A DNA stretch of 64,000 nt, taken from the sequence record NC_061445.1, one strand, 5' to 3'. Below, piece by piece: positions 25,103 to 60,506 of this stretch (position 1 is its first letter; each line of letters starts with the position of its first letter). The notes below the pieces were generated by a model. The model did no database searches. It worked only from the letters and a program-made list of their open reading frames with translations, and was not told where the DNA came from. The position numbers were made by a program, and so were the translations under genes.

Positions 25103-25363
25103 ATGGTATACGAACGCGAAGAACTTCAAGACATGCCGCTTGATGTGCTCTACCATCTGGCGTGCGCTAAAGGTCTGCTGGACGATCTCGACGATGAAGA
25201 CGATGTGCCTGATCGTGAAGTGCTGGTGGGCATGATTCTTGATGCGCAGAGCGAAGATGAACAGGCAGAACAAAACGCTGCCGACAAACAACGCGCCGAA
25301 GATGATCGCGATCCGCGTATCAATCGTCGTGATGGCCAAGACGGATCTGAGGACTACTGCTAA
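25103..25363 (+). CDS. Acidic protein with a two-helix (Rho-N/HeH-like) module
   Basis: ATG 25103 after GGAG; LQDMPLDVLYHLACAKGL...DREVLVGMI. Confidence 0.65.
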   Translation: MVYEREELQDMPLDVLYHLACAKGLLDDLDDEDDVPDREVLVGMILDAQSEDEQAEQNAADKQRAEDDRDPRINRRDGQDGSEDYC

Positions 25364-25581
25364 TGTCACCTACTGAACTGAATGAGTATGTTCACCTCGT
25401 ACTGACGCCTGTTGCTATGGCATGGCGCGAGCAATTCCCCAAAAAGAAACAAACGATTTGTACGATGAAGACGCCGTACTCTTGTCGTATCAAGTTCGTT
25501 GATGACCGTGAAGTTGAAAAAGCGTGGCAAGCATTCTGCCGCACACACGGTATCAAGAACGAAGAAACACTCGAAGTCTAA
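25363..25581 (+). CDS. Small hypothetical protein
   Basis: Coupled start. Confidence 0.6.
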   Translation: MSPTELNEYVHLVLTPVAMAWREQFPKKKQTICTMKTPYSCRIKFVDDREVEKAWQAFCRTHGIKNEETLEV

Positions 25582-25585
25582 ATTC

Positions 25586-25614
25586 AAGGGCTGCCATTGC
25601 TGGTGGCCCTTTTT
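25586..25614 (+). terminator. Intrinsic terminator
   Basis: AAGGGCTGCCA-TTGC-TGGTGGCCCTT plus T-tract. Confidence 0.7.
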
Positions 25615-25619
25615 CATTT

Positions 25620-25628
25620 CTGTAAATA
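25620..25628 (+). promoter_or_regulatory. CTGTAAATA candidate phage-sigma promoter
   Basis: Just after a terminator, about 33 nt upstream of ATG 25661. Confidence 0.55.
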
Positions 25629-25660
25629 CTCCGCACACTAACCACAACGCGGAACTTATA

Positions 25661-26029
25661 ATGCGCCGATTTGTACTCATCTTCAACGTCAGTCAGGAAG
25701 AACTAGATGACCGTCGTTTCTTTCAGGCAAAGCTCAACATTGTCTCATCACTGCGCCGCGCTCGCTGTGTGTTTCTCGTCGTGCGCGAGACAAAGCAGGT
25801 ACTCTGTGTCTCTGAGCTAACGTATCAACCAAGCGTCGAACCCGGCATTCGTCAGGTAGACTTCGACGCCCCGCGTGATGTGACCGCATACGTTCTGCCA
25901 TTCACCGAACTCACTACTGCTATGGTCAATAACTCGCAGGACCCAAGCATTCGCTACTTTGGCCGTCAGCTTGAAATGGATGCTGACCAGCTTAAACGTT
26001 TTCACACTCAACTGGAGATTGTCCCATGA
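25661..26029 (+). CDS. Hypothetical protein
   Basis: ATG 25661, in frame with the track ORF. Confidence 0.6.
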   Translation: MRRFVLIFNVSQEELDDRRFFQAKLNIVSSLRRARCVFLVVRETKQVLCVSELTYQPSVEPGIRQVDFDAPRDVTAYVLPFTELTTAMVNNSQDPSIRYFGRQLEMDADQLKRFHTQLEIVP

Positions 26030-26268
26030 GTCAGTCATTAGGCGCTTCACTTGGTGCTCGCTTCGCTGTTAGCTCTCAGGAGAATATTGAGCGCCGTAAG
26101 AAGCGTGACCCGAAGAACAAGACGCTGACCTGTGCTGGCACTACAGCGCAGTACAATGCTGTCGGTATGCTCGCTAACAAACTCGACGTGTCACGCTCGC
26201 GTGTCATTGAATTGGCAATCGAAGAACTGCTGGCGAAGCATGGTATTAAGGTTGAGAGTGATGAGTAA
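26026..26268 (+). CDS. Ribbon-helix-helix (CopG-like) DNA-binding protein
   Basis: LANKLDVSRSRVIELAIEELL helix pattern. Confidence 0.65.
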   Translation: MSQSLGASLGARFAVSSQENIERRKKRDPKNKTLTCAGTTAQYNAVGMLANKLDVSRSRVIELAIEELLAKHGIKVESDE

Positions 26269-26626
26269 CGATACGCATATCTTTTGCCGACTGTATGGCG
26301 TACAGCACCGACTGCGTATCATCGCATATAACTTCCTCAAACCTCAGCACATGATAACAGTCGATCCCTCTGACGTGCTCAAGATGATGCCTCGCATTAT
26401 GGTGGGAGCAGCATACGACACGTACACGCCGTACAAAGTGATCAAGGCGGGACGTGCTGACTTCAAAATCCGCCTGATAGAGCGCACTGATGCGAACGTG
26501 TGGCGCTACGTGTTCGAAGACTATCGAGGCAAGCTGTTTGAGACTTACTTAAATCGGAGAACGTATGATACAGCTGGGGACGATAACAGCGTTAAGTCTA
26601 AAAGACAAAGCGCCACGATCCACTGA
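26261..26626 (+). CDS. Hypothetical protein
   Basis: ATG 26261 overlaps upstream stop. Confidence 0.6.
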   Translation: MSNDTHIFCRLYGVQHRLRIIAYNFLKPQHMITVDPSDVLKMMPRIMVGAAYDTYTPYKVIKAGRADFKIRLIERTDANVWRYVFEDYRGKLFETYLNRRTYDTAGDDNSVKSKRQSATIH

Positions 26627-27200
26627 CATTGATATCACGCCCGTATCGAAAGACGAAGACTGGGGCTCATTGAGTCCCTTTCATCTCGGGCCGTGTCGCA
26701 CACCTGACGGTACGATGTTTCTCAACATGGAAAACTTGTGGCAGTACAGCAAGGTCTATGAAGACCACATCGTCAACTCGAATGATATCTTTCACGGTGA
26801 GATAAGCAGAGAGTGGTATGAGTGGCATCTCAAAGGTGCTGGCTCAAAACAGGCGCATCGCTATCCTATGGGGAAAGACCAAAAGGCTTTGTTCTCCAAA
26901 TGGGGCGACTTGCGCCTTTCTTACGTTTCAGCACGAAAACAAATCTACGTGCCGGAATATGCCAAGCTGGTAATCAATCAGCCGAAGTTCAAACGTCTGC
27001 TCAAGGAATATAAGAAAGGTGCGAAGATCGTTGTGCGCGATTATGACACCTACGATATTCTACGGGCCTACCCAAATGCTCGTAGCCCTTGGCTCGAAGC
27101 GATCAACAACCCGAACGCGAAGTTTGGTCACTCATTCGTGATTGCCCTCGCCCTGCTGTTTCACGACAGACCACTATGGTACAATCAATGGATAATCTAA
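26565..27200 (+). CDS. DUF6939-like protein, possibly NADAR-related
   Basis: IDITP...LSPF..G...NMENLWQYSKVY...ARKQIYVPEY pattern, as recalled for DUF6939; not searched. Confidence 0.45.
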   Translation: MIQLGTITALSLKDKAPRSTDIDITPVSKDEDWGSLSPFHLGPCRTPDGTMFLNMENLWQYSKVYEDHIVNSNDIFHGEISREWYEWHLKGAGSKQAHRYPMGKDQKALFSKWGDLRLSYVSARKQIYVPEYAKLVINQPKFKRLLKEYKKGAKIVVRDYDTYDILRAYPNARSPWLEAINNPNAKFGHSFVIALALLFHDRPLWYNQWII

Positions 27201-27505
27201 AGTATCTGGCTTGCATTGAACTGAGCACAAGAGAAGGTAATCTGAATCTACCTATCTTACCTAAGTGTGATATGCAGGCGTTTCTGCTGGACAGCCGTAC
27301 TAAAACGAAAGTGCCTATCAAGCTCAATGCCACAAACGTGGTGAAAGTCTGCGGCAAGACGTGTGGCAGCCTGCAATGGTTCGACTGCGTTAATCTGCTT
27401 ATTTGGTCGTCATTCGAGCCAGAGCGTTTCACGCTGTATATTGAGCGGACACTCAAAGCAGACGAGACAGCGCGCGCCCTGCAATCTGCTGAACTCTGCA
27501 AATAA
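27188..27505 (+). CDS. Hypothetical protein
   Basis: ATG 27188; stop lies inside promoter copy 3. Confidence 0.55.
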   Translation: MDNLKYLACIELSTREGNLNLPILPKCDMQAFLLDSRTKTKVPIKLNATNVVKVCGKTCGSLQWFDCVNLLIWSSFEPERFTLYIERTLKADETARALQSAELCK

Positions 27506-27570
27506 CTGGTCAAAATAGCCGTTCTGTTTAGTAGCTCGATATGATATACTAAGAGCGAGCGCTATTGCTC
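27498..27570 (+). promoter_or_regulatory. Composite early promoter element, copy 3
   Basis: CTGGTCAAAA 27506; TG-a-TATACT 27545; GAGC/GCTC hairpin. Confidence 0.7.
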
Positions 27571-27598
27571 AAAAACAACTAAAGCTGAGGAGCTTATC

Positions 27599-28039
27599 AT
27601 GACTACTACTTACAACATCGCTGATCTGAAAACCCCTGAAATGTTCGCAGATGCCCGCCTGGGTCACTTATCAGATTTCGCTGATAAACTTCGCGCTCTG
27701 CTGGGTCGTGAAGATATGTATCTGGAACTTGAAGCAGAAGAGGGTGCTGATATTTCAGACGTGTGCCCTGATGCAGATTCTGTTGTGGGGGACAATCTGA
27801 TCAACCTGCATATTCACTATGCAGATGACCCTGATCATGTAAGCGATAAGGGTGCATGGTACGCTTACTTAGCTTTCCCGCATGTTGAAAATCATTGGGG
27901 CGAGTGGACAAATAGTTTCATCCTGTTTGTCGAATCTAACGACGGGGATTTCCTTGAAGAGATCGCGTTCGAAAATGGCAACCCGAAAATGCTGTCTGAT
28001 ATTGTCGACCGCATTAACTACTGGTTCCCTGCCGAATAA
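27599..28039 (+). CDS. Acidic hypothetical protein
   Basis: 146 aa, SD hairpin upstream. Confidence 0.75.
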   Translation: MTTTYNIADLKTPEMFADARLGHLSDFADKLRALLGREDMYLELEAEEGADISDVCPDADSVVGDNLINLHIHYADDPDHVSDKGAWYAYLAFPHVENHWGEWTNSFILFVESNDGDFLEEIAFENGNPKMLSDIVDRINYWFPAE

Positions 28040-28086
28040 GTGATTTGTGTTGAGCATTCGCTGAGTGCTCAATGAAAATCCAAACA
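28040..28086 (+). repeat. Intergenic hairpin repeat, copy A
   Basis: GATTTGTG-TTGAGCATTC-GCT-GAGTGCTCAA-TGAAAATC. Confidence 0.75.
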
Positions 28087-28110
28087 ACACCCTAAGCTAA
28101 GGAGCTTAAC

Positions 28111-28428
28111 ATGTCTTCATCTACTACTCTGACTTTCATCTTCCCAGAAATGACTACTCTGGAAGTTTCAATCGGTAACGGCGTTGTGCCCGCTTATCTG
28201 GGTCTCGCCGAAAACAAAGACATAACATTCAGCGATGTTAAAGCGCTGCGTCTGATGGGCGATTCAAACATCGTGGGCGCAATGAGCCGCTTCGATCAGT
28301 CGATGCTTAACATGCTGATCGCCCGTCATGAAACGCACGAGCACATTCGTTGCCGTGACGCCATTGAGCATGGCACTGAGCATTTCCCGTCTACTTGTCT
28401 CTACCTGAAAGTAGCGCACCACCGCTAA
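28111..28428 (+). CDS. Hypothetical protein
   Basis: 105 aa, SD hairpin upstream. Confidence 0.7.
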   Translation: MSSSTTLTFIFPEMTTLEVSIGNGVVPAYLGLAENKDITFSDVKALRLMGDSNIVGAMSRFDQSMLNMLIARHETHEHIRCRDAIEHGTEHFPSTCLYLKVAHHR

Positions 28429-28472
28429 GATTTGTGAAGGGCATTCGCTGAGTGTCCTTTGAAAATCAAACA
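28429..28472 (+). repeat. Intergenic hairpin repeat, copy B
   Basis: GATTTGTG-AAGGGCATTC-GCT-GAGTGTCCTT-TGAAAATC. Confidence 0.75.
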
Positions 28473-28491
28473 CTGTTCTGAGGAGAACAAC

Positions 28492-28845
28492 ATGCACAAC
28501 ATCGAACTGCCTGTAGACGCTCGCCACTTTGACGATCTGACCAACGCAGAGTTCCTGCAAGTGTGTCGCGCTCTGTCTACTGTCACTGGTCGTGAAGACC
28601 TTGAGTTTCGTTCGCATCTGATGAGTCGCTTCATCGACATTGCGTATCGCTCTGGCGACACTAACACGTTCGGTATCAGTAAGTGCCGTGTGCTAATGCC
28701 GTCAGAAGTCCAACGTGAGGATATCGTTGAAGACTTCGAGATCCATCACGGCGATGCAGTCATCTCTATCGAACGCCAGCGCGATACAGAGACAACGCTG
28801 CAACGTATCGCAGGTGCCATTGAAGCCTGTTTACCAAGAGAGTGA
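28492..28845 (+). CDS. Hypothetical protein
   Basis: ATG 28492 after SD hairpin. Confidence 0.7.
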   Translation: MHNIELPVDARHFDDLTNAEFLQVCRALSTVTGREDLEFRSHLMSRFIDIAYRSGDTNTFGISKCRVLMPSEVQREDIVEDFEIHHGDAVISIERQRDTETTLQRIAGAIEACLPRE

Positions 28846-28916
28846 TTGTTGCTCGCAGATTCTTACGAGAGTCTGCTGTCAACATAACCCAAAATACCTA
28901 AGCTGAGGAGCTTAAC

Positions 28917-29327
28917 ATGAAACAATTCCCACGTCGCGGCGAAACGTACACGCTGAAACAAATCGAAACTGAACTGGACCTGCGTGACGCACCGTTCCTG
29001 CGTTTCATCCCGCAGAAAGTGCGTTATGAGCATGAGAGTGCAGCGGGCATTCAGGTTATTCAGTCTGCGAATGTCGTTGACCTGCACCACCTTGAAGGCT
29101 GGGCAGACACTGAGTGGGTATTCGTTCGTGAGACCGAAGAGTGGATTCCACTGTTCCGTGCGAAAGACGATGCCGCGATTGAGGCGCTCTGTGTTATCGA
29201 GCCTTCTACCGATTACAGTAGTCGTATTGATGGCGGTATGCACATCTACCCGAAAGGTACTGAGCATCGTCAATACGAACCGTATGACGAGAAGCTGCAT
29301 GGCGATCTGCTGGTGGCAGTAAAATAA
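28917..29327 (+). CDS. Hypothetical protein
   Basis: 136 aa, SD hairpin upstream. Confidence 0.7.
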   Translation: MKQFPRRGETYTLKQIETELDLRDAPFLRFIPQKVRYEHESAAGIQVIQSANVVDLHHLEGWADTEWVFVRETEEWIPLFRAKDDAAIEALCVIEPSTDYSSRIDGGMHIYPKGTEHRQYEPYDEKLHGDLLVAVK

Positions 29328-29334
29328 ATAACAG

Positions 29335-29366
29335 GGATGCTCGCATAGGCGGGTGTCCCATTTTAC
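29335..29366 (+). terminator. Intrinsic terminator
   Basis: GGGATGCTCGC...GCGGGTGTCCC followed by ATTTT. Confidence 0.6.
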
Positions 29367-29411
29367 ATTCGGGTCGTTTACTCGAATAACTTAACTTGAA
29401 GGGAAATAAAA

Positions 29412-29933
29412 ATGCTGGATAAAATCACCCACATCGTTCACACAATGATGACCTCTCTTAAAGACATTCGCAACGTGCAGGAAGTTCGCTTCATCGGTAA
29501 CGAAGCTGTGCGTTTTCGTTTGCATGACAGAACGTTTGACGTGCGCGGCAACTACCCGTTGTTCTCTGTGCATGAGATCGAAGGGTCTTGCATGTGTGGT
29601 TCGAAAGCTGCCCGTGATGTTGAAGCGCAGATGAATAGCGGTGGCGTAGACGGCGAAGAAGACTTCGGACATAACTCTAGCGACGAAGCGCTCAACGATC
29701 TGCTGTGTGCTCACGTTGAGTCTATGGAAGAAGAAGCTGTGCGTCGATACAATGAAGAATGCGGTGGCCCTGACTTAGACCCTATTAACAGTCAGCGCAC
29801 TTGGTTGAAGACGCACTTCCTGCACATCGGGCACAACACGCCTGACCTTCTCGAAACAGTATTGATGATGGAGGGCAGAGAGCGCCGTGACGAATTGGCA
29901 AACGCCGTTAAGGAGAAGATATGGTCAGATTGA
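29412..29933 (+). CDS. Hypothetical protein
   Basis: 173-aa ORF. Confidence 0.7.
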   Translation: MLDKITHIVHTMMTSLKDIRNVQEVRFIGNEAVRFRLHDRTFDVRGNYPLFSVHEIEGSCMCGSKAARDVEAQMNSGGVDGEEDFGHNSSDEALNDLLCAHVESMEEEAVRRYNEECGGPDLDPINSQRTWLKTHFLHIGHNTPDLLETVLMMEGRERRDELANAVKEKIWSD

Positions 29934-30211
29934 TCATAGGCCTCATTCGTGACTGGCGCAAGCAGAAGCAACTCGAATTTAAGACTGAGGTGCTTGAGGC
30001 AATAATGATGTTAGACCTGCGTGACAAACAACTGCTGTGTCGTGCGTTCGGTCTGCCTGTTGATATGAATGGCCTTCATGCTATCGCAAGCATGAGCCGT
30101 AAAGAGTTAGCGAAACAGTGTGCGCAGTATTACGTGCGTTTCGCCGATAAGAAGTGGAAAGTGTTACCTGCTTTCCGCGATGTGCTGTACAACATCCGAA
30201 GAGGAAAATAA
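29921..30211 (+). CDS. Hypothetical protein
   Basis: ORF with AGGAG RBS. Confidence 0.65.
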   Translation: MVRLIIGLIRDWRKQKQLEFKTEVLEAIMMLDLRDKQLLCRAFGLPVDMNGLHAIASMSRKELAKQCAQYYVRFADKKWKVLPAFRDVLYNIRRGK

Positions 30212-30214
30212 GTA

Positions 30215-30652
30215 ATGAGCGAAATAGATATTCTGATCCGAGAGTTCGAGCGGGCGTATCTCAAGTCACTTGCATCTGTCTGGGGAAACGTTGCCTATCA
30301 TGCTGGCGATTATAACCCTGAGCTGAAAAACATTCGCATGTACTTGCGCTTTCGCACTCAACAACAATGTTTGTGGAATCGTCCTGTTCTGGTACTCTCT
30401 ACTATCGACGTCACCAATCCGGGCCAAGGCGAGTTCTCGAAGTTACTCGCACGTACCAAAGAGATGTGTCGTCAACGTGACTGGATTCTGCAAATCGAAA
30501 ACGTACTGACGCCTAAGTTCAGGAAGTTTCTTCAACGTGGTGGATTCAAACCTTTCGGTATTGATGCAGAAGTGTCGTACGGAAGTTTGTATTGGTTCCA
30601 CGACGAAACAATCCCGCAGCAATGCGCGATGTACCCGGAGATTAGACGATGA
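30215..30652 (+). CDS. Possible GNAT-fold acetyltransferase-like protein
   Basis: LSTIDV.NPGQGEFSKLL...IENV...KFLQRGGFKP resembles GNAT motifs A/B. Confidence 0.45.
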   Translation: MSEIDILIREFERAYLKSLASVWGNVAYHAGDYNPELKNIRMYLRFRTQQQCLWNRPVLVLSTIDVTNPGQGEFSKLLARTKEMCRQRDWILQIENVLTPKFRKFLQRGGFKPFGIDAEVSYGSLYWFHDETIPQQCAMYPEIRR

Positions 30653-31095
30653 CTATTTGGTGGCCTACAATAATAATCTGCTTCGTGCTGCCCATGTCTG
30701 CTTGCTATGCGACTATCCCGTGGTTTCGTGCTGCTGTTAATCGCAGACTGACGTTCAAGCCGTTTGACTATGACGCGCTCACTCAAATCTTCGAGCGTGG
30801 TCTGCCTGAGCGTTTGACTATTGAGTGTCTGCAAGCAACGTACAAGGGCAACACACCAGAGCATTTGTTCGTTGATATTTATCCGCACAAAGAGAACGTT
30901 GCTGCTGTTCGCTTTCGTGTGGACGAAGACTTTCCCATAGCGCATATCTTTCACAATGCGCTGGTGGGTAACTATAGTGCGCTGTGCATTCGTAGCAAGA
31001 AGCCGCCTGTGTTGAGTATCAACCAGTCTGTGTATCGTGTGATCGAATACGAATATGATAGCCAGTACCTGTTGATCTACCTCAAACACGAGTAA
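30649..31095 (+). CDS. Hypothetical protein with N-terminal hydrophobic segment
   Basis: IWWPTIIICFVLPMSACYA. Confidence 0.6.
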   Translation: MTIWWPTIIICFVLPMSACYATIPWFRAAVNRRLTFKPFDYDALTQIFERGLPERLTIECLQATYKGNTPEHLFVDIYPHKENVAAVRFRVDEDFPIAHIFHNALVGNYSALCIRSKKPPVLSINQSVYRVIEYEYDSQYLLIYLKHE

Positions 31096-31101
31096 ACAAT
31101 C

Positions 31102-31401
31102 ATGGTCACTCAACAACAACTCAAAGAGTTCTCGGCGTTACCTTCTTTACAACGGAAAGTGTTTCTTCGAAGTCTTCAGGTAGAGATGTTGAGTGGCCTA
31201 CCCGAAGTAGAACCGATAGTACGTGAGATGCTATGTCGCGCTATCGTGGTTGATATTGCTCAGGCTGAACTGGCATTACTTGCCGCTCGTCAAATGTGCG
31301 AGAACAAGGACGTTAAGAAAGCCATTGATGAATTGCTTCAATTCGCTGCGCGTCTGCATGACGCCGCATCTGATACTTTATTCTTAGGAGATACCGCATG
31401 A
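31102..31401 (+). CDS. Hypothetical protein
   Basis: 99-aa ORF. Confidence 0.6.
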   Translation: MVTQQQLKEFSALPSLQRKVFLRSLQVEMLSGLPEVEPIVREMLCRAIVVDIAQAELALLAARQMCENKDVKKAIDELLQFAARLHDAASDTLFLGDTA

Positions 31402-32447
31402 ATACGATTTCTGGCGCAATGATTGATGAAGATGTTCTGGAGTGGCTGGACGATTTTAATGGTCACAAGATTCGTGAGATGTGCGAAGCGATCAATCAGC
31501 TTGCGTATGCGCATCGCACCGAGCTGTCTATCCCGAACATGGGTAGTGATGAAGATCTGGCTGCGCTGTCTCATGCTGACCTGTTCACTATTCTGTCTCT
31601 CGCTTGCCCTGACGCGAAGTATGACCTGATGTTGTCTAACGTGCAACTGCTTGGTCTTGCGCTTGCTGCCAAAGGCGTTATCGACTATCACCTGCCTGAA
31701 TTGAATAGCCCGATTCTGGCAAAGCGTGAGTTCGTAGACAAGCACCGTAAAAACATTATCGGTGGCATAAGCACTCGTGGTCAGATTGTTGCTGCACTCA
31801 ACGAATGGGTATGCGGTCTGCGTGACCTTGAGATTGTACATGCTGGTTCTGACGTACCGCCTGATATTGCCGGTATGTATCTGTGTCTCGACGAGCATGA
31901 ACAAGTTCGCTACGGTCGCTTGTTCCCTAACGGCAGTCAGGGTTGGACGTTCTGCGAGTCGTATGCTGACGGCGGCTCTACTGGTTGGTATAGCGGTGAT
32001 ACGGATCACATGAGCGATGACGATCTGCCTATGTCGCTGCTGACCGGCTGGGTACTCATTGCAGAGTGGCATAGCCCATCGCGTGAAGTGAAAGACAACG
32101 TTGTACCTATTGGCCTGAGTGACACGCATCGCATCTTTATGTTCCTGCGCAGTCTCAGCCCTCACGTGAAAGCAGAGCTGGTGGCACACTTCGAAGGTGT
32201 GCTTGACTATAAATCGCCTACCTCCGTTGACACTATCGGTCGCTTGACTACACACGACTGGCGTATGGCTGCTGTCGCTGTTGCTGATGACAGCGAGATC
32301 CCTGATGGTGCGACAAGCTGGACTAACGTACCTGCCTGGACGTGTTTCGTCGCAGTTGCTAAAGCACTTGGCTTCAACTTCGAAACCCGCCAGTTCGACC
32401 CGCAGTTCGAGTATCAGGCTAATGACGATCATTTAGAAGGAGAGTAA
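31398..32447 (+). CDS. Hypothetical protein
   Basis: 349-aa ORF with AGGAG RBS. Confidence 0.7.
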   Translation: MNTISGAMIDEDVLEWLDDFNGHKIREMCEAINQLAYAHRTELSIPNMGSDEDLAALSHADLFTILSLACPDAKYDLMLSNVQLLGLALAAKGVIDYHLPELNSPILAKREFVDKHRKNIIGGISTRGQIVAALNEWVCGLRDLEIVHAGSDVPPDIAGMYLCLDEHEQVRYGRLFPNGSQGWTFCESYADGGSTGWYSGDTDHMSDDDLPMSLLTGWVLIAEWHSPSREVKDNVVPIGLSDTHRIFMFLRSLSPHVKAELVAHFEGVLDYKSPTSVDTIGRLTTHDWRMAAVAVADDSEIPDGATSWTNVPAWTCFVAVAKALGFNFETRQFDPQFEYQANDDHLEGE

Positions 32448-32448
32448 C

Positions 32449-52642: not shown

Positions 52643-53221
52643 ATGGAGCAGATCGATTTGTTTGATACTAAAGGTGCCCACGAGATTTCTGAGTATATAG
52701 AACTCGGTTCAGATGGACTTCCTCTAATGTTGGCTACACGCAATGACTGGCGAGTGTATGCTGCGTTCGGCGATCCTGTAGTGCGCGCGGAACTTTTGGA
52801 AAAGCACCCAGACCTGAAGCCGGGAAAATTGAAGTTCCGCAAGAAGCTGGTCATGATTCAAGAGTTTGTGTTGGTCACTCATGACACACTCAAGGAAAGT
52901 CTGCGCAAGAAACAAGGCGATGTATACTCTGGAAGCTACGACAGGGACCCGCAGTACCTGATCAATGTGTATAATCACACTGAGAAGGTAGCGTTGTTCA
53001 TGCGTGACTTCGAAGACTTCATGTCGGGCTTCATGAACGCCGTGCATCTGTTCACTGTGTCAACTGTGTATGACGGTCGCCTGTTGATCTTCGCAGAGAA
53101 CGGAGCACCTATTGTCTCCGCAGAAGAAACGCTGGAGATGCTTAACGAGATTGAGCACTTCATTAACCGAAGCAAAGTGTATCGCGTACACTCACAACAC
53201 GCCATCTACCGTACAATCTAA
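52643..53221 (+). CDS. Hypothetical protein
   Basis: ATG 52643 after GAGGAG. Confidence 0.65.
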   Translation: MEQIDLFDTKGAHEISEYIELGSDGLPLMLATRNDWRVYAAFGDPVVRAELLEKHPDLKPGKLKFRKKLVMIQEFVLVTHDTLKESLRKKQGDVYSGSYDRDPQYLINVYNHTEKVALFMRDFEDFMSGFMNAVHLFTVSTVYDGRLLIFAENGAPIVSAEETLEMLNEIEHFINRSKVYRVHSQHAIYRTI

Positions 53222-53268
53222 TCTATCAATAGCGGCAGCGCTCACGGGTGCTGCACAGGAGAAACATT

Positions 53269-54915
53269 ATGTCATTCGATATGCGCAAAAACGTACTCAT
53301 GGTTCGCTCTATGTCTCACGGCCAACCGTTCTATAACTTCTACAATGCAGTGGGCATCGAGTTTACGCTTGCCGGTTACCAGCTTAAAGAGATTTATGAT
53401 TGCCATTACCAAGGTAAGCTGAGTGGCATTCGCACGTATTGGGGCTTCTCAAACAAAGCCACCAGTGAGACTTTCGAGTTCTCATCGCGCGGCGATCTGA
53501 TGTGGAACGTGTCGCTGAACAATACTTGCCACACTCTGCTTCCGTTTGAAATGATTATCGGGCATGAGGGTTTCAACGTTGTTAATGGCTTCATGATTGA
53601 AGACCATGTACGCAAGCTGATCCGAATCCACCAGAGAGCTGTTGGTCGCACTCTCGAAAGTTATGTGTGGTTCGAAAAAATGACTGAACCTCAGATGCGT
53701 GAGATGCTGGCTGCTCTTGGCCTGGGCCCGCTGCGCATTGAACGTGCAGACCGTGCTGAACTGATCAAGATTCATACCGAATGGCTGCGTAAGCATGACG
53801 ACGAGTTTAAGTATACGCACGATGCTATTGGTCTCGATCACGACCAGAAGATACCTGCTGACTTCTACGATGACCACGGTCGCCGTATCTCTCGTCGTAT
53901 GCTGGCTGCACACAAAACAGTTGAGATGATGGCCACCGAGCTGTCCAATCTCATTCGCATTTTCGACCTGAACCCTAACTTCAATCACAAAGATCCGATG
54001 TGGGAGTTCGGGCTTGCTACAATCGCCGAGCGTTTCATCTATGCAGAAGACGCGAAAGAAGCGCTTGCTGCTATTCTCGAAAACAGCCAGTTCGTTGTTA
54101 ACGGTGTGTATGCGTTAGCGCGTGATTACGATTGGCGTCAAGTCAACGAAGAAACAGAGGAATACCGCCAATCGTTGATTCGTCGTCTGCTGCAAGAACT
54201 GCGCAATGAAATCGAAGCCGAAGATTCGATGTTTGTTGTCGAAGACGGGATTGTGATGATCAAAGCTGTCGCTGTCACTGCGCACAACGAACAACTGTTG
54301 GCCGAACCTGACCTCGAAGAAGATGAAGAAGAGGACGAAGAAGAGGTTGATGAGGTAGAAGATACGTCCGAAGAACAACGCGCCGTGTTGAAAGCACTCA
54401 CTGCTCTGCCTGACGATTCTCTGCGTAAGCTGTGTACTAATCATAAGCTCGCGCCTAAGCATCGTATTAGAAAGCTGACTCGCACTGAGATGATTGAACT
54501 GTGCTGCGATTCATTCGGTACTGAACTGCCTGACGATATGGATGACGTAGACCCAGAAGCTGAGGCGGAAGTTGAGGCAAAAGCTGAATCAGGCAAACGT
54601 CCACGCAAGTACCCAGCTTTGGTTGATGACGTTAATATCAGCTACGACACTATTCGCTCTATTCTCATTCGTGCTAAAATCCCAGGCACTGATCATAAAG
54701 GCGAACTGCATCGTGGTACGAAAGAGGCCCGAGCTATCGCTCGCAAGAAAATACTCAATAGCCTGAAAACTGCTGTTGATACAGGCTTGCTTGAGACACT
54801 GGCTGCCTTTACGCTCGAAGCACTCGCCTGTGCTCTGACTAAAATGAAAGACGGTGATCGCTATCCTCGTGACTCTGCGTACCTGAAAGAACTAATTAAA
54901 CACGCAACTCGTTAA
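53269..54915 (+). CDS. Large acidic multi-module protein with two Rho-N/HeH-like modules
   Basis: ATG 53269 after AGGAG; modules at about 53671 and 54397. Confidence 0.75.
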   Translation: MSFDMRKNVLMVRSMSHGQPFYNFYNAVGIEFTLAGYQLKEIYDCHYQGKLSGIRTYWGFSNKATSETFEFSSRGDLMWNVSLNNTCHTLLPFEMIIGHEGFNVVNGFMIEDHVRKLIRIHQRAVGRTLESYVWFEKMTEPQMREMLAALGLGPLRIERADRAELIKIHTEWLRKHDDEFKYTHDAIGLDHDQKIPADFYDDHGRRISRRMLAAHKTVEMMATELSNLIRIFDLNPNFNHKDPMWEFGLATIAERFIYAEDAKEALAAILENSQFVVNGVYALARDYDWRQVNEETEEYRQSLIRRLLQELRNEIEAEDSMFVVEDGIVMIKAVAVTAHNEQLLAEPDLEEDEEEDEEEVDEVEDTSEEQRAVLKALTALPDDSLRKLCTNHKLAPKHRIRKLTRTEMIELCCDSFGTELPDDMDDVDPEAEAEVEAKAESGKRPRKYPALVDDVNISYDTIRSILIRAKIPGTDHKGELHRGTKEARAIARKKILNSLKTAVDTGLLETLAAFTLEALACALTKMKDGDRYPRDSAYLKELIKHATR

Positions 54916-54950
54916 TCGTCTAACCATACCTAACATTGTAGGGAATCAAA

Positions 54951-55403
54951 ATGAAAGAGAAAAATATTCTGGTACTGAATCGTGTTCGCCTCGTTATGGA
55001 AGATATGCTCGTTGAGCAATTCGCTGACTTGGCCCGTGAAGACCAAGAACGTGCAGGCGACCTGAGCGTTATCATGCTGTCTAAGATTCAGCAGGGTGTT
55101 AACGCTATGCTGGCGAACGGTAACCCAGAAGCATGTTGTCGTGCTGATGTTGCGTGGACAGAATGCTCGTTCTTATCGACGACTGGTCTGTTCGTGATTG
55201 CATCGTCTGCCGATGCTGAGGTGCTCAATCACTTTGAAGACTCGGACTATCTATGCCACATACGGGCTATCGAGCACTTCGCAAAAGAAGCTGGCTTCAA
55301 GTTCACTGTTGAGCCTATTCGTGTAGCGTTTCCATTCGAGAGCACGATCATCCCAGAAGCTCTGCGCTACGTGCCACCTACAGATAACTTGACTAAGCGC
55401 TAA
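54951..55403 (+). CDS. Hypothetical protein
   Basis: 150-aa ORF. Confidence 0.65.
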   Translation: MKEKNILVLNRVRLVMEDMLVEQFADLAREDQERAGDLSVIMLSKIQQGVNAMLANGNPEACCRADVAWTECSFLSTTGLFVIASSADAEVLNHFEDSDYLCHIRAIEHFAKEAGFKFTVEPIRVAFPFESTIIPEALRYVPPTDNLTKR

Positions 55404-55407
55404 AACA

Positions 55408-55487
55408 GCAAAAATCTGGACAAAATGAGGGTAGTATGCGAAACTGCCCTATGCTATAATAGAAGCGTAGCATGTGCTACGCTTTCT
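55408..55487 (+). promoter_or_regulatory. Composite early promoter element, copy 8
   Basis: CTGGACAAAA 55416; AGGGTAGT/ACTGCCCT dyad; TG-c-TATAAT 55455; AAGCGTAGC/GCTACGCTT hairpin. Confidence 0.8.
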
Positions 55488-55511
55488 AACGTATGTCTGA
55501 GGAGACAAATC

Positions 55512-55973
55512 ATGCAAGAGCATAAAGCAACCCCGGCCGATATCGAACTGCAAGATCGTATGATGGAAGCGGGTGTCCAGCGCATCATCGAATTGAAACC
55601 TGAGTGGATCGACGTTTGTACTGCGGGCCTTCGTTTGTACCTGACCGTGTGCGATCAAATCGGCGGTCCGATTCCTGAACTGCGTTTCGTCCATAACAGC
55701 AAACCTTGTCGCATTCAATTCAACTTGAACGAATCGGCAGAAGGTACCGAGTTCACTGCGAACGATATCGATCACGAAAAGCAAATGGCAATATGTGATG
55801 CCATTCTTGATGTGGCCGACGCGAACGAAGATGGCCACTCGCTGTTAGACCTTGCCATTTGTTCTGGTCGCCTGTTCATGATTGGTTATGACGGGCTTGC
55901 GGGTACGGTTGAGAAAGTTTGCTTCCGTTTCGCCAAGAAGAACTACACAATGAATCTGGTCAAAGGTGAATAA
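55512..55973 (+). CDS. Hypothetical protein
   Basis: ATG 55512 after SD hairpin. Confidence 0.7.
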   Translation: MQEHKATPADIELQDRMMEAGVQRIIELKPEWIDVCTAGLRLYLTVCDQIGGPIPELRFVHNSKPCRIQFNLNESAEGTEFTANDIDHEKQMAICDAILDVADANEDGHSLLDLAICSGRLFMIGYDGLAGTVEKVCFRFAKKNYTMNLVKGE

Positions 55974-56664
55974 CATGAAACTCTCGCCAACTATGTTGAA
56001 ACGCAGCAAGCTAAACCCTGATGTGTTTGCGCTTGTTCGTGAAGGTGAAGTGCTGTCCTCATTCAAACCGAGCAAGCTCTTTGCGGCGCTCAATGCCGTT
56101 GTTAAAGACAGCGGGCTGAAAGAAGTCGATATCGTGTGGCGTGACGGTACGCGCACTGTAGAACATCTCATTGTTCACCACACGCGCAAGCTAGTATCGA
56201 CTGACACAATCATGAACTACTACAACGTGTGCCTGATGCTTCGCGCTCAAGGCGCTGCTGCTAGTCTGTCTACGCCTGTAGACATTCGTACTATGTTTGA
56301 TTCGAACGGGCCTCTGATTAGCGAGATTCACATTGACCCTGAAATCGTCGATAAGCTGGTGGAAGCACTTACACCCAAGCACCCTATGTTTGCAGACGCG
56401 CACGGCATCGAAGAAGATGATGATATGTTCGATGATGACGACGATTATGACCCTGATGATGACTTCGACGATGAGGATTATCTCTCCGAAGATATCTCAC
56501 CAGAAGAAGATCGTCTGAGCATTAGCGCTTGGGGATATCGCGCCGAAGACTGGACGACTACTTTGACGGACGACGATATTCAGGAAGTGCATAGCCTCGA
56601 AGTGGGTATTGACCCTGACATTGAATTGCCACTCGCACCTGACGCGAAGGACAAATACTTCTAA
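55966..56664 (+). CDS. Hypothetical protein with acidic C-terminus
   Basis: 232-aa ORF. Confidence 0.65.
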   Translation: MNNMKLSPTMLKRSKLNPDVFALVREGEVLSSFKPSKLFAALNAVVKDSGLKEVDIVWRDGTRTVEHLIVHHTRKLVSTDTIMNYYNVCLMLRAQGAAASLSTPVDIRTMFDSNGPLISEIHIDPEIVDKLVEALTPKHPMFADAHGIEEDDDMFDDDDDYDPDDDFDDEDYLSEDISPEEDRLSISAWGYRAEDWTTTLTDDDIQEVHSLEVGIDPDIELPLAPDAKDKYF

Positions 56665-56855
56665 TGAAAAGCACTAACGAACTGGTCAAAGAATTGAAGC
56701 AGCGCGGCGAGCTTATTATTGACGAGCGAAACAAAGACATGCTGCCTGATTTGACATTCACGCTTGATTGCATGTGTATCACCTACAAGAAGCGGGAAGT
56801 AGAAACAACTAAGCGCGGCCGCGTTGTCAGAATCAAACTGACCAGTATTCACTGA
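56664..56855 (+). CDS. Small basic protein
   Basis: Coupled start. Confidence 0.55.
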   Translation: MKSTNELVKELKQRGELIIDERNKDMLPDLTFTLDCMCITYKKREVETTKRGRVVRIKLTSIH

Positions 56856-56994
56856 TGTTCTCTTTGGCCCGACTGCCCAGCGATGCTCATCCCCCAGAAG
56901 AGGTGCCTCGCGCAGAGGCATGGCAGTTCGGGTCCTTTTTGAAGCGCACTTGCGAGTACGCTGCATAAAGTAAAAACAAACAGGAGGCTGTTGA

Positions 56995-57456
56995 ATGAAA
57001 TTCACCGAAGTAAGTAAAGATGCACAGGTCATTCTCATGGGTTCCGCACTTGCGGGAGTTATCGAAGTGTTTGGCCGCGATGCCGATGACGGCGGGCGCA
57101 AGCTGCTGATTACTGCATTGAATCAGATTGGCCTGACGCCTGACGAGTTCAAGGCTCTGATCAACAACATGACAATTTCAGTCAGGGCAGAAGTTGGTGC
57201 AGTGCGTGTGCTCGAAGCAGATCCGGACGATGACTTCGAAGAAGACGCCGAAGACTTCGGTGCCTGTGCTGAGTGCGATCGTCCAGTAGAAGATTGCGTG
57301 TGTGACGATGAAGACGACGACCTCGATACGTCAGAGCAACGTCCAGGCAATCTGAACGATGACGGTCGGACAGACGAAAATGGCTGGCAGAATCTCGATG
57401 AAGATGCCGTCTGCCGTGTATGCCACCAACAAGTGTGTGAGTGCCGAGGCTACTGA
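56995..57456 (+). CDS. Acidic protein with two CxxC...CxC motifs
   Basis: CAECDRPVEDCVC and CRVCHQQVCEC; SD hairpin upstream. Confidence 0.7.
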   Translation: MKFTEVSKDAQVILMGSALAGVIEVFGRDADDGGRKLLITALNQIGLTPDEFKALINNMTISVRAEVGAVRVLEADPDDDFEEDAEDFGACAECDRPVEDCVCDDEDDDLDTSEQRPGNLNDDGRTDENGWQNLDEDAVCRVCHQQVCECRGY

Positions 57457-57668
57457 TGAGCAGACCGACACAAGACGAAATCAATGGTCAGATAGCTGCC
57501 TCCGAAGAGCAACGCTATAACGAGCAGATCGCTCAATACGATGACTGGACAGACGACGAGCTGGCTGATGCTGTAGAAGCAAACGAGCTTGTGGGTGAAG
57601 ACGAAGACGCAAGCGACTACAGCCGCGAAGCGCTGATTCGAATGCTGCTGGCGGATCGACGATTCTAA
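57456..57668 (+). CDS. Small acidic protein, essentially one Rho-N/HeH-like module
   Basis: YDDWTDDELADAVEANEL...YSREALIRML. Confidence 0.65.
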   Translation: MSRPTQDEINGQIAASEEQRYNEQIAQYDDWTDDELADAVEANELVGEDEDASDYSREALIRMLLADRRF

Positions 57669-57750
57669 GCAAAAATCTGGACAAAATGAGGGTTGTCTCA
57701 AAACAGCGCCCCTGATACAATATAAAGACAGCGAGACATGTTCTCTCTGT
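57669..57750 (+). promoter_or_regulatory. Composite early promoter element, copy 9
   Basis: CTGGACAAAA 57677; TTGTCT-17-TACAAT 57716 with TG extension. Confidence 0.75.
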
Positions 57751-57900
57751 TATGTGCCTATAACGTTTTGACCGTGTGTTTATCTTTTCCCGGGCACACG
57801 GTCCTTTTTAAAGTCGCTTCGATGAGGCTGCTTTAAAAAGGGTTCAATACCCTTTGAGCGCACCGGGCTTTACGCGGTTTCCGCCTTGTGTGCTCTCATG
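57727..57900 (+). ncRNA. Candidate structured leader or small RNA
   Basis: About 190-nt ORF-free stretch with five successive inverted repeats; no family recognised. Confidence 0.35.
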
Positions 57901-57922
57901 CTAAACCGCAAAGGAAATAGAT

Positions 57923-58735
57923 ATGCCAAACTTACGTGCTAAACCAGAAGACAAATTCTCTAAAGCTCGTTCTGCGAAGAACTCACCTGAACGTCAGGCT
58001 GCTGCTGAGAAGAAACGCACAACCCCACGCGGTCCGTCTTCTGCTAAACCTCGTCAGTTGCCGCCGGGCTATGGCTATAAGTCAAAAGCTACAGGCGAAC
58101 GTGCGCCAGAGCGTGACGATAAAGAGTCCCAGAAACCTGATTTGAGTAAGAAAGACTGGGTTGCTCGTCGTGACGCAACGCCGAAGATGCGTGATGAAGA
58201 ACGTGTATTCAATCTCGTTCACGCAATTCTGGCTGCATGGAAAGCGGATATCGGACACGCCGAACATACGGCAGCATCTTCTGGTATCATCAAAGTGTCT
58301 CGTCGTAAAGTTGAAGGCGCATTGCGCGATCTCAAGAATACGCGCTTCACTAAAATCCCAACGCTCATCAATGAAATTCTCACACACTCTGATGTGTGTG
58401 AGGAATTCGGGATGTGGGTGTACGTCGAGCACGACACGCCGGATTGGATCTTCGTGCGTCTGCCTGAAGACAGCACGCCTGTGCTTCGCGCTGATATCGT
58501 CTACGACCGCACAGGTCAAACTGCTACGACGATCACGACTTCGAGTGAACCGCTGCTTGAAGTCTTAGGGGAAGACGACGAGCCAGAAATGCTCGAATGC
58601 AATGAGCGCGATATTGAAGACCTTGAAACTAAGGCAATGCGCAAAGAGCTGATCGACAAGGGCATCATCAAGCCAGAAGCTGCTGATAAGCTGAGTCGAC
58701 CGGATCTGATGAAGCTGTTAGCGTACTACGCATAA
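57923..58735 (+). CDS. Protein with basic disordered N-terminus and C-terminal Rho-N/HeH-like module
   Basis: 270 aa with AAGGA RBS. Confidence 0.75.
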   Translation: MPNLRAKPEDKFSKARSAKNSPERQAAAEKKRTTPRGPSSAKPRQLPPGYGYKSKATGERAPERDDKESQKPDLSKKDWVARRDATPKMRDEERVFNLVHAILAAWKADIGHAEHTAASSGIIKVSRRKVEGALRDLKNTRFTKIPTLINEILTHSDVCEEFGMWVYVEHDTPDWIFVRLPEDSTPVLRADIVYDRTGQTATTITTSSEPLLEVLGEDDEPEMLECNERDIEDLETKAMRKELIDKGIIKPEAADKLSRPDLMKLLAYYA

Positions 58736-58774
58736 GCAATAACGAGCAGGGCGCTGAAATATAGCTGCCCTGCT

Positions 58775-58863
58775 ATCTGCGAAGTATGCAGAAAACTGGA
58801 CAAAATCGTGGTTGTTATCTGACAGCCACCTATGCTACAATATATGCAGACGCAGTGAGCGTC
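58775..58863 (+). promoter_or_regulatory. Composite early promoter element, copy 10
   Basis: CTGGACAAAA 58796; GTGGTTGT/ACAGCCAC dyad; TG-c-TACAAT 58836; GACGC/GCGTC hairpin. Confidence 0.8.
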
Positions 58864-58901
58864 GAAATCAAACTAAACAACAATACTGAGGAGTATTTAT
58901 C

Positions 58902-60506
58902 ATGGCACGTATCGAAACTAACTCTAACCTGGTTGGCAAAACTATCATCCTGCTGAACGGCACCAAATCTAAAATCGAAGATGCTATCGCGTCCGGTTAC
59001 AAGGTGAAAGGTCAGAGCAAACGTATCGCAACCCGCTGCGTTATCAAAGAGGGTTCTCACTTCCGTGAGATCGAGCGCATGAATCTGAGCCAGCTTGAAG
59101 ATACCGGCGAAGGTTACGTCAAGCTGAAAGAAGCGAAAGCGTCCGGCAAGAAAACTGCCGGTAAGAAAGAAGCTGCAACGCCGAAAGCGTCCGGCAAGAA
59201 AACTTCTGGTAAGAAAGATGCGAAGCCGTCGAAAGACAAAGAACCTAAAGTTCGTCGCAAATCTTCCGAAGAGCAGTCCGAAGATTATCAGAATCTGGCA
59301 CACGCTATCATCAAAGGCGGCAAAGCTAAACCTGCAGTTGAAATCGAAACTGTTGACGAAGCGCTGACCGATACTGTGGCAAAACGTATCGCCGATATCG
59401 TGCTTAACACTGACGTTGCGAAAGTGTGCGCTGATAACAAAACGCCGATCGCAAACGCTCTGGATGTTACTTACGGTGCCGAGTATGCTGCTGATGGTAA
59501 CGTCATGCAGATCACTTTGAACCTGCAATACGCGAAGCCTGTCAAAGTGCTTGCTCGCCCTACGCTCGAAAATGCAGAAGCTATCGCAATGCGAGCGCAG
59601 AAAATGATCGCGCCTAAGCTGTCTAAGAAGCTGGCGAAAGCGATTCGTGAAGCGTTCAATATCGAAGACGCAGACGAGCTGGAAGCAGGTACTATGCTGC
59701 TGAAAGACGGCGAAGAGTTTGTCTTCTACGGCGAATCTGCGAAGCACCTCGGCAAAGCGCTGCTGTATGTCGTAGCTACCGACAAGTTCAAATCTGTCCT
59801 TGGCTCTACGCTGGGTGAGTACGAAATCCCAGACGCAGAAGAAGAAAACGACGACGAGGAAGAAGTCGAAGAAGAGGAAGAAGAGGTCGAAGAGGTCGAA
59901 GAGGAAGAAGAAGAAGACGGCGAAGAAGACGGCGAAGAAGAAGAAGACGGCGAAGAAGAAGATGCCGCCGAGTACGAATACGTCAAAGTCACTAAAGACC
60001 ATATCAGCATGGTTAACAAGAAAGTGACCGCGAAGTATCACGCCGCGCTGGCTGAACGCTTCAACACTACCGAAGAAGTTCTCGTCCCTGGCCTCGTATT
60101 GACTGACGGCGACACAACGTTCGCGTACCTTGGCTGTGATAGCAAAGGCGGCCTGCTCGTTATCGACGTAGAAGCTGAGGCAGATGATGAAGATGTTCTG
60201 CTGTATAGCAAAGCGGATATCAAAACGCTGAACGACTTCAACCCTGTGATCGATAGCGGCCTCGTTTCTGACGACGAAGAAGAAGACGGTGAAGAAGATA
60301 CCGAAGACTTCGAAGACGGTAACGACGATGAAGAAGAAGACGGCGAAGACGAAGAAGAGAGCTTCGAATTTGACGACGAAGAATCTGTTTACCTCGAAGA
60401 TCTGTCTGACGACGAACTGCGTGAACGTGCCGTTGAGCTGGGTCTGACTACACCGCGCAAATCTGAAAACATGACCGGCGCACAACTGCGCAAGCTGCTG
60501 AAATAA
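58902..60506 (+). CDS. Modular protein: K-rich repeat, acidic tracts, internal duplication, C-terminal Rho-N/HeH-like module
   Basis: 534 aa; SD hairpin upstream; paralogous to the next ORF. Confidence 0.8.
   Translation: MARIETNSNLVGKTIILLNGTKSKIEDAIASGYKVKGQSKRIATRCVIKEGSHFREIERMNLSQLEDTGEGYVKLKEAKASGKKTAGKKEAATPKASGKKTSGKKDAKPSKDKEPKVRRKSSEEQSEDYQNLAHAIIKGGKAKPAVEIETVDEALTDTVAKRIADIVLNTDVAKVCADNKTPIANALDVTYGAEYAADGNVMQITLNLQYAKPVKVLARPTLENAEAIAMRAQKMIAPKLSKKLAKAIREAFNIEDADELEAGTMLLKDGEEFVFYGESAKHLGKALLYVVATDKFKSVLGSTLGEYEIPDAEEENDDEEEVEEEEEEVEEVEEEEEEDGEEDGEEEEDGEEEDAAEYEYVKVTKDHISMVNKKVTAKYHAALAERFNTTEEVLVPGLVLTDGDTTFAYLGCDSKGGLLVIDVEAEADDEDVLLYSKADIKTLNDFNPVIDSGLVSDDEEEDGEEDTEDFEDGNDDEEEDGEDEEESFEFDDEESVYLEDLSDDELRERAVELGLTTPRKSENMTGAQLRKLLK
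59135..59204 (+). repeat. 22-bp direct repeat with 48-nt period, encoding KASGKKT twice
   Basis: GAAAGCGTCCGGCAAGAAAACT at 59135 and 59183. Confidence 0.85.

Follow-up and report, generated by a model that had tools for sequence, protein, structure and literature searches.

The helix-extended-helix (HeH) superfamily, to which the SAP, LEM, Rho N-terminal (Rho-N) and Ish1 domains belong, is recognized by two helices placed across an extended linker of 10-14 residues and by its hydrophobic pattern. In SAP, LEM-like and HeH domains DNA is bound via the linker and the start of the second helix, the linker being the usual contact surface in this fold class, and in chromatin proteins of the DEK kind long acidic tracts adjoin a small DNA-binding domain of HeH type. 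Both the fold class and its frequent occurrence in viral proteins are already known. Here we describe a small module, predicted to adopt this fold, which occurs repeatedly in the proteins of one jumbo phage and mostly next to poly-acidic tracts. The DNA analyzed, a stretch of 64,000 nucleotides referred to as the window, corresponds with 100% identity to positions 186,001-250,000 of the genome of Erwinia phage pEa_SNUABM_3 (NC_061445, Alexandravirus, 266,175 bp), a jumbo phage whose host is Erwinia amylovora. New with respect to the known systems are the subfamily, its multiplicity within a single genome and its consistent pairing with poly-acidic tracts; in the literature on SAP and HeH domains in jumbo phages and on this phage group no earlier description of the module or of the proteins was found.

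An original prediction had listed six segments of a two-helix module in five otherwise unrelated proteins of the window. The genes bearing these segments are annotated as 'hypothetical protein', all lie on the + strand and are part of a long series of small genes. Gene names (gp312, gp318, gp319 and gp320) follow the locus-tag numbers of the phage record (MPK68_gp312 style), and genetic code table 11 was used throughout. The copies are denoted by their host gene and window position as 312a (53671), 312b (54397), 318 (57537), 319 (58613) and 320 (60393), with the remaining one labeled A (25124).

Relatedness of the module copies

All six peptides were recovered as exact translations where the original prediction had placed them. 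Its proposal that they represent a single module holds for 320, 312b, 312a and 318, which can be firmly assigned to one family by profile comparison with P values of 1e-5 to 1e-14, lower than those of the decoys. On the same grounds copy 319 is a probable member, while A is unproven, its membership being about evenly poised, because only its helix 1 aligns. Three more copies, which the original prediction had missed, lie beyond the window end at genome positions 254904-255011, 255234-255341 and 257175-257270. The first two (Ba and Bb) are found in a protein of 257 amino acids (aa) with 44% Asp+Glu (genome 254667-255440; the 254k protein) and the third one in a 253-aa protein (genome 256737-257498). 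As judged from these alignments, the count stands at eight well-supported or probable copies and one doubtful copy in at least six, possibly seven, otherwise unrelated proteins, all of them non-structural.

The assignments are based on ortholog profiles, which were derived from the syntenic regions of four relatives, namely an IMG/VR contig, Dickeya phage AD1, Erwinia phage Alexandra and pEa_SNUABM_7 (genus Snuvirus). In an all-against-all comparison with hhalign, for which the best of 336 column-shuffled controls reached a P of 2.4e-4 (score 19.8), 312b, 320, Ba and Bb group closely (P 3.6e-7 to 1.6e-14); 312a and 318 are linked to this group via gp320 and also to each other (P 2-3e-6 over 23-35 columns), and 319 and A are marginal with best P values of 7e-4 and 3e-3, respectively. 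A strict core-type profile of 41 sequences, from which the families under test were excluded, detects 312a (P 4.5e-6), gp318 (P 3.6e-5) and the 253-aa protein (P 5.1e-5). The same profile aligns gp319 over 33 columns (P 0.0037) and A over 20 columns confined to helix 1 (P 0.0027), both barely better than all 60 shuffled controls. When the core profile was run against the 91 ortholog-profiled open reading frames (ORFs) at genome 209-262 kb, where the best reversed-profile decoy had a P of 0.046, gp319 was the best ORF outside the training set (P 2e-4, 34 columns), followed by the 253-aa protein (P 4e-4) and A (P 0.008, again helix 1 only).

Leave-family-out hidden Markov models (HMMs), scanned against all 2,995 ORFs of the genome together with reversed decoys, detect gp320 with an independent E-value (iE) of 4e-7 and the two copies of the 254k protein with 0.004 and 0.018; gp319 is found at top rank with an iE of 0.35, the reversed decoys lying near 1. 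In the whole genomes of the four relatives two hits outside the training set are detected, the SNUABM_7 ortholog of the 253-aa protein (E 5e-5) and the gp319-type module of AD1 (E 0.003 per genome), the latter by a profile holding no gp319-type sequence. An HMM devoid of gp320-family sequences recognizes four of five distant gp320 orthologs (6e-10 to 7e-6). Independent evidence comes from PHROGs, where the last 42 positions of the gp320-family profile match the first module of the 254k protein (E 1.2e-7) and the 254k-family profile matches residues 348-434 of gp312 (E 2.7e-8). Apart from the module the host proteins are indeed unrelated, as the original prediction had it, since after masking of the modules no pair of them matches with an E-value better than 0.005, and the sole match at that level lies in Lys-rich stretches.

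The alternative that the likeness is due to chance or composition, picked by eye among charged, helix-prone sequences, draws on several failures. An HMM from the raw six segments, which the original prediction had suggested as a check, retrieves only 320 in leave-one-out runs (iE 0.39); as its self-matches are circular, it was rejected as evidence and replaced by the ortholog profiles. An iterative HMM run over the genome and the ORFs of the relatives did not grow beyond the six seed families (decoys clean), further copies proposed by eye in gp325 (~1,000 aa) and at the C-terminus of the 253-aa protein found no support at P<0.01 and were dropped, and A aligns over one helix. Against this stand the clean decoys, with reversed E-values of about 1 and a best shuffled hhalign P of 2.4e-4 compared to the observed 1e-5 to 1e-14, the independent PHROG cross-matches and the convergence on one fold of two structural models computed from different alignments. 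The raw HMM itself finds both copies of the 254k protein with E ~1e-4 (best reversed decoy ~4). A chance likeness is therefore very improbable as an account of the whole and is ruled out for the gp312, gp318 and gp320 copies as well as for those in the two proteins beyond the window end; for A it is about as probable as homology, and for 319 less so. A profile search of the PDB sequences yielded nothing significant.

Predicted fold and family placement

AlphaFold models were calculated for gp318 from an alignment of 12 orthologs (predicted local distance difference test, pLDDT, 82.8) and for the gp320 module from ten aligned paralogous modules (pLDDT 92.6). The gp318 model contains helices at residues 6-28, 33-42 and 57-68 with an extended 14-residue linker between the last two, and the gp320 module consists of a helix at residues 9-18, a linker with one short turn and a helix at residues 32-39. 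According to these models the module comprises about 36 residues, folded as a helix, an extended linker of 10-14 residues and a second helix; the spacing of the two helices and the hydrophobic pattern of the predicted models are those that define the HeH superfamily.

Both models were compared to 48,161 representative PDB chains with VIA-align. For the gp320 module the Rho N-terminal domain (1a62_A) is found at rank 2 (Z 4.9, root-mean-square deviation, rmsd, 2.0 Å over 37 residues), and at least 15 of the top 50 matches are Rho-N, SAP or LEM domains, mostly with an rmsd of 1.5-2.4 Å over 33-37 of the 40 residues. The SAP domains among these top 50 are those of hnRNPUL1 (Z 4.1, 1.6 Å over 35 residues), SLX4 (1.5 Å over 34), Hcc-1 (1.6 Å over 35), FAN1 (2.0 Å over 36), PIAS1, Ku70, SF3B2, MKL1 and THO1, and they are accompanied by the SAP-like domains of MANF and CDNF and by the LEM domain of emerin (Z 3.5). 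For the gp318 model the Rho-N domain 1a62_A takes rank 1 (Z 5.5, 2.2 Å over 44 residues), and emerin LEM (Z 4.2, 1.5 Å over 39 residues), YqbF, CDNF and DEK are found as well. The Foldseek comparison proposed in the original prediction gave no match to the PDB at E<=0.001 for either model, although its low-rmsd matches include the SAP domains of FAN1 (33-35% identity, 1.6-1.8 Å) and 3'hExo and the Rho N-terminal domain; it is in the VIA-align search that a single fold class is enriched. The weight of the predicted fold accordingly lies in this enrichment and in the agreement of the two independent models. In a viral structure library the neighbors remaining after the phage's own relatives are mostly named 'Rho termination factor N-terminal domain', 'HeH/LEM domain' or 'SAP domain' and are spread over many phages and giant viruses, one of them being a mycobacteriophage 'Asp-rich protein'. 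SAP clusters of the ESM Atlas lie nearest to the gp320 C-terminus at 0.77-0.79, which is taken as a lead only.

When 25 module sequences were searched against Pfam, only SAP, LEM and Ish1 recurred, with 5 (at E<=1), 6 and 3 members and best E-values of 0.003, 0.009 and 5e-5, respectively. An exhaustive search of 1.84 billion representative proteins with the module profile returned 32 matches at E<=0.001. Besides orthologs of gp312, gp318, gp320 and the 254k protein, these include unrelated proteins of very acidic composition (24-50% Asp+Glu), in which a clear consensus occurs once or in two or three tandem copies, as well as three genuine Ish1-repeat proteins (E 3e-6 to 5e-5, summed over 3-5 repeats), one of which also exceeds the SAP threshold. 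On account of the sub-threshold Pfam results and this library search the module is filed as a new subfamily of the HeH superfamily, divergent, unannotated and contained in no single Pfam family. The resemblance to Rho-N, HeH, SAP and LEM domains noted in the original prediction is thus borne out by the two models and their neighbors, the recurrent weak Pfam matches and the profile link to Ish1, and we hold the domain identity and the fold class to be highly probable.

The 32 matches further comprise proteins built of 'homing endonuclease associated repeats', in which only the second half of the profile (columns 16-39) matches, repeatedly. Up to 16 such matches occur in long repeat proteins of the library (P0017, P0018, P0019, P0022 and P0035). 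The one checked, P0017, has 14 of these repeats (PF18780), and the matches may reflect either a remote relationship or a common helix-turn pattern.

Acidic cassette and possible ligands

The original prediction had the module usually sitting beside acidic tracts. This applies to the core-type copies, all of which lie within 11 residues of one, and fails for 312a, which has no adjoining tract. Four core copies lie at most 11 residues from a poly-acidic tract, a feature present in only ~12 of ~309 gene-like ORFs. The identity between orthologous copies amounts to 30-81% and between paralogous copies to 15-52%, and the duplications are therefore older than the splits between the genera. The gp320 family is known from 58 phage records of Erwinia, Dickeya and Yersinia phages, and five distant orthologs (from Salmondvirus, Rivsvirus, Yoloswagvirus, Sasquatchvirus and an unclassified Yersinia phage) all keep the gp320 layout, ending in a poly-acidic tract and the module. 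Altogether the module is conserved across at least seven genera, and the tract-plus-module layout is found in six genera besides its own.

Two relatives illustrate the mobility of the module. In the gp320 ortholog of Yersinia phage fHe-Yen9-02 (L008 1201-2733) it shares 72% identity with the second copy of the 254k protein, more than with any gp320-type module, which suggests an exchange of module or cassette between paralogs. In AD1 an inserted gene, gp310 (L003 34924-35373), lies between the body of gp319 and its module, and the module has been retained as an ORF of its own with 50 aa, gp311 (L003 34175-35543 overall). Judging from these alignments, the module was spread by duplication, and apparently also by exchange, mostly as a cassette of poly-acidic tract and module. 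What the comparisons establish is a homologous HeH-fold domain which was duplicated and shuffled together with acidic tracts and is under purifying selection.

Within the acidic tract preceding the gp320 module a D-F-D-F motif is often embedded in several genera (C-termini of L009-L011); in the present phage its place is taken by F-E-F (60340-60390). This aromatic motif may be a short linear binding motif.

The linker carries a net charge of +1 to +5 in the core copies, +1 in 312a and 319, -5 in gp318 and -7 in A. For the core-type copies (those of gp320, 312b, Ba, Bb and the 253-aa protein) a role as tether is predicted by analogy: the conserved basic residue pair of the linker and the start of helix 2 would contact DNA in a SAP- or LEM-like fashion and would hold long polyanionic disordered proteins on DNA or nucleoprotein, where the acidic tracts could trap or dislodge basic DNA-binding proteins. 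With an acidic linker, as in gp318 (and in A, should it prove genuine), such a basic surface could not serve in this manner, and these copies probably bind something else. The basic linker pair, which is surface-exposed and conserved across four paralog families, fits the tether idea. Also in keeping with it is the context of the 254k gene, which is flanked by two genes, one for a protein of 181 aa whose tail is rich in Lys/Ala and one for a 172-aa 'H1-like' protein consisting largely of A-K-P/A-E-K repeats (genome 253972-256177, equal to L006 3972-6177), an acidic/basic trio located a few genes upstream of topoisomerase II. Lys-rich tracts are present in the host proteins too, at residues ~75-125 of gp320 and at the N-terminus of gp319. 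As a further detail of this neighborhood, the Lys/Ala-rich 'H1-like' protein ends in D-F-D-F-D (L006 6150-6177).

Several points weigh against this explanation. The Foldseek E-values are non-significant throughout and Z does not exceed 5.5, which is expected for ~40 residues and not decisive alone; the Pfam models SAP, LEM, HeH and Rho_N never reach their thresholds. The net charge of most copies is about 0 to -2 and the modules as a whole are not basic, DNA should be repelled by the adjoining polyanion, and the charge of the linker differs from copy to copy, between +5 and -7, with strongly acidic linkers in two copies. Furthermore, the same fold docks proteins elsewhere, as in LEM-BAF and MANF/CDNF-BiP, both of which are among the structural matches. 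A single target for all copies is therefore unlikely, and a ligand common to the core-type copies is plausible. We regard the DNA or nucleoprotein tether as a tentative assignment that falls somewhat short of an even prospect; for the entire explanation, combining paralogous HeH copies, spread as a cassette and the tether role, the case for and against is in balance.

The original prediction had favored a shared docking tag by which several early proteins are recruited to one target (phage DNA, RNA polymerase, the degradosome or a phage compartment), gp318 being a possible competitor. Taken as a protein-docking tag, the module would bind one common host or phage protein. Docking folds such as emerin LEM-BAF, CDNF/MANF-BiP and SLX4-MUS81 do occur among the structural neighbors, the module sits tag-like at the extreme C-terminus of gp318, gp319 and gp320, and the linker motif is conserved among the core copies. 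Between paralogs, however, only fold-determining residues are conserved, and linker charges from +5 in 312b to -5 in gp318 and -7 in A argue against one interface for all. As for the competitor, gp318 is absent from Alexandra and SNUABM_7, where the other copies persist, so that a dedicated competitor would be dispensable. Nor is gp318 almost only the module, as had been claimed: it also contains a 23-residue N-terminal helix, which is the most conserved part of the protein. Taken together, a common docking tag appears rather unlikely.

A ligand might also be lacking altogether, the module being a stable mini-fold that caps or nucleates disordered acidic proteins and is carried along passively with the acidic cassette. 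What paralogs have in common is mostly the hydrophobic core and the helix caps, and the module accompanies low-complexity tracts that vary freely in length and sequence, as this would predict. Orthologous copies, on the other hand, are conserved across genera (81% identity within the 254k-protein copies, 57% within gp320) while the flanking tracts drift, and the exposed basic linker pair is retained, as described above. This leaves a purely structural role with little probability.

Returning to the tether, a more far-reaching version would describe a 'polyanion-on-DNA' toolkit, in which HeH modules anchor DNA-mimicking acidic tracts on the host nucleoid or the phage DNA and there remove basic nucleoid proteins of the host or act as chaperones for the Lys/Ala-rich H1-like proteins of the phage itself. 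The D-F-D-F motifs embedded in the tracts can be likened to those of histone chaperones. As a joint claim this is improbable; if true, a bacterial virus would possess a system akin to chromatin remodelling, involving at least six genes. A phiKZ-type phage nucleus as the destination of the module is unlikely, on weak evidence, since the phage genome yielded no Rpb2-type RNA polymerase domain. In addition, a reading of the N-terminus and acidic tail of the 254k protein as a ribosomal stalk mimic was considered, received no support from Pfam and was dropped.

Irrespective of the ligand, the module offers an initial structural entry point to no fewer than six conserved proteins annotated as 'hypothetical' from a clade of ~60 sequenced jumbo phages, whose hosts are plant pathogens (Erwinia, Dickeya) and Yersinia and some of which are used in fire-blight cocktails. 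It is a small domain family missed by current Pfam models, and other metagenomic proteins of very acidic composition contain it as well, singly or in tandem. If the module tethers polyanionic tails to DNA or the nucleoid, it would represent a phage route to manipulate DNA-associated proteins, of which no description was found; if it is merely a common fold, ordinary domain shuffling would be at work.

Gene context and comparison with known systems

The host genes and further features of the window are compiled in Table 1. Searches of the whole proteins against PHROGs, NCBIfam and Pfam gave no functional annotation.

Table 1. Host genes, module copies, poly-acidic tracts and candidate expression signals in the window (window coordinates)
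Feature	Position	Strand	Basis
86-aa hypothetical protein holding segment A	25103-25363	+	ORF; start at ORF residue 15 according to Atlas record and homologs
Segment A, linker net -7	25124-25237	+	hhalign P 0.003-0.008 over 19-20 columns, helix 1 only
gp312, 548 aa, two module copies	53269-54915	+	annotated coding sequence; orthologs in four relatives
Module 312a, internal	53671-53775	+	hhalign P 2.7e-6 to gp318, 3.3e-6 to gp320
gp312 poly-acidic tract, ends 11 residues before 312b	54301-54366	+	tract scan
Module 312b, core type, linker net +5	54397-54504	+	hhalign P 6.6e-13 to Bb, 1.5e-8 to Ba, 3.6e-7 to gp320
gp318, 70 aa, N-terminal helix and one module	57456-57668	+	annotated coding sequence; 13 homologs
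Module 318, acidic linker net -5	57537-57647	+	hhalign P 2-3e-6 to 312a and gp320
Sigma-70-like promoter candidate with TG extension, upstream of gp319	57693-57721	+	consensus scan
gp319, 270 aa, basic disordered N-terminus, globular middle, C-terminal module	57923-58735	+	annotated coding sequence; orthologs
Module 319, probable member	58613-58720	+	top-ranked non-training ORF; AD1 ortholog E 0.003
Sigma-70-like promoter candidate with TG extension, upstream of gp320	58812-58841	+	consensus scan
gp320, 534 aa	58902-60506	+	annotated coding sequence; phrog_33433 E 2e-187 (PHROG of no assigned function)
gp320 first poly-acidic tract	59829-59972	+	tract scan
gp320 second poly-acidic tract, ends 4 residues before module	60264-60383	+	tract scan
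Module 320, core type, best-supported copy	60393-60500	+	iE 4e-7 by HMM without own family
Intrinsic-terminator-like hairpin, 10 bp stem, directly after gp320	60528-60552	+	consensus scan

No Pfam or NCBIfam family was detected in gp312. In gp320 an N-terminal domain shared with gp321 is followed by the Lys-rich tract, the two poly-acidic tracts and the module at the extreme C-terminus. The N-terminal domains of gp320 and of the downstream gp321 are paralogous over ~52 residues (58902-59075 and 60588-60755, 29% identity, E 8e-5), and gp321 is devoid of a module. A 577-aa minus-strand ORF antisense to gp320 (58830-60563) is a by-product of the GAA/GAG-rich coding strand and not a gene.

For segment A neither Pfam nor the ESM Atlas gave support. 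In the 86-aa protein the last ~25 residues (25265-25360, of the type D-K-Q-R-A-E-D-D-R-D-P-R-I-N-R-R) are more conserved than the module-like segment among 30 homologs. One homolog, P0051, is named by NCBI as a protein of Salmonella enterica serovar Infantis; its contig of 266,333 bp has the size of these phages, and the assembly may contain an Alexandravirus-like genome.

The original prediction had called the host proteins early, which is unproven. The consensus scan for sigma-70-like sites gave 9 in all compared to 7.6 expected and thus no enrichment, although gp319 and gp320 are each preceded by one. Wastewater metatranscriptome contigs match at 99-100%; RNA and phage DNA are indistinguishable in these data, and the depth peaks coincide with GAA-repeat tracts. 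At least 14 metagenome studies, covering soil, food fermentation, tobacco, compost, retting and wastewater, contain DNA near-identical to window 57400-61900, and the phage group is environmentally widespread.

Compared to the SAP domain, the module has the same two short helices, extended linker and L-x-x-L-[ST]-x-x-E-L-R start, and the SAP domains of FAN1, hnRNPUL1 and Hcc-1 superpose with an rmsd of 1.5-2.0 Å over 34-36 residues at 26-35% identity. In contrast to SAP, which is basic, its net charge is neutral to acidic, and its linker is several residues longer, so that the alignment to the Pfam model stops after helix 1 and the turn (positions 1-21 of 37, 8-18 bits). The isolated gp320 module reaches 17.7 bits and 312a 13.6 bits with PF02037, below the cut-off of 23.9. 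In a six-frame search of the genome the SAP model finds three matches, all of them modules (E 0.24-1.4, 8-10 bits), with 312a as the genome-wide best at 10.1 bits only.

The Rho N-terminal domain (1a62, 1a8v) is the best or second-best structural match of both models (Z 4.9-5.5, 2.0-2.2 Å), and many 'Rho_N domain-containing' proteins of phages and giant viruses are the closest viral structures. Unlike in Rho, no cold-shock-like RNA-binding domain is adjacent to the module, and the Rho_N model (PF07498) finds no match at E<=10 in the genome, whereas 9 of 14 control genomes exceed its cut-off.

LEM, as in emerin, shares the similarly long linker, fits the gp318 model with 1.5 Å over 39 residues and is matched weakly by 6 of the 25 module sequences. 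The scores, however, amount to 12-17 bits compared to a cut-off of 24 for PF03020 (16.6 bits for the isolated module; a single match in the genome search, the gp320 module, with 12 bits and E 0.057), and the HeH/LEM model PF12949 is silent, without a match at E<=10 in the genome. BAF, the partner of LEM, is not known from bacteria.

Ish1 (PF10281), which we take to belong to the same clan as SAP and LEM, is the only curated family with a statistically significant link to the module; 3 of the 25 members match it (best E 5.3e-5; model cut-off 26.6 bits). It differs in its tandem repeats, its W-S-D start motif and the absence of pairing with poly-acidic tracts, and the link consists of scores summed over repeats.

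A parallel in architecture is provided by DEK. Although DEK acts on nucleosomes, which are absent from the phage host, and has no sequence relationship to the phage proteins beyond the fold, it displays the same arrangement of HeH-type domain and acidic tracts, and its SAP region is among the structural neighbors of the gp318 model.

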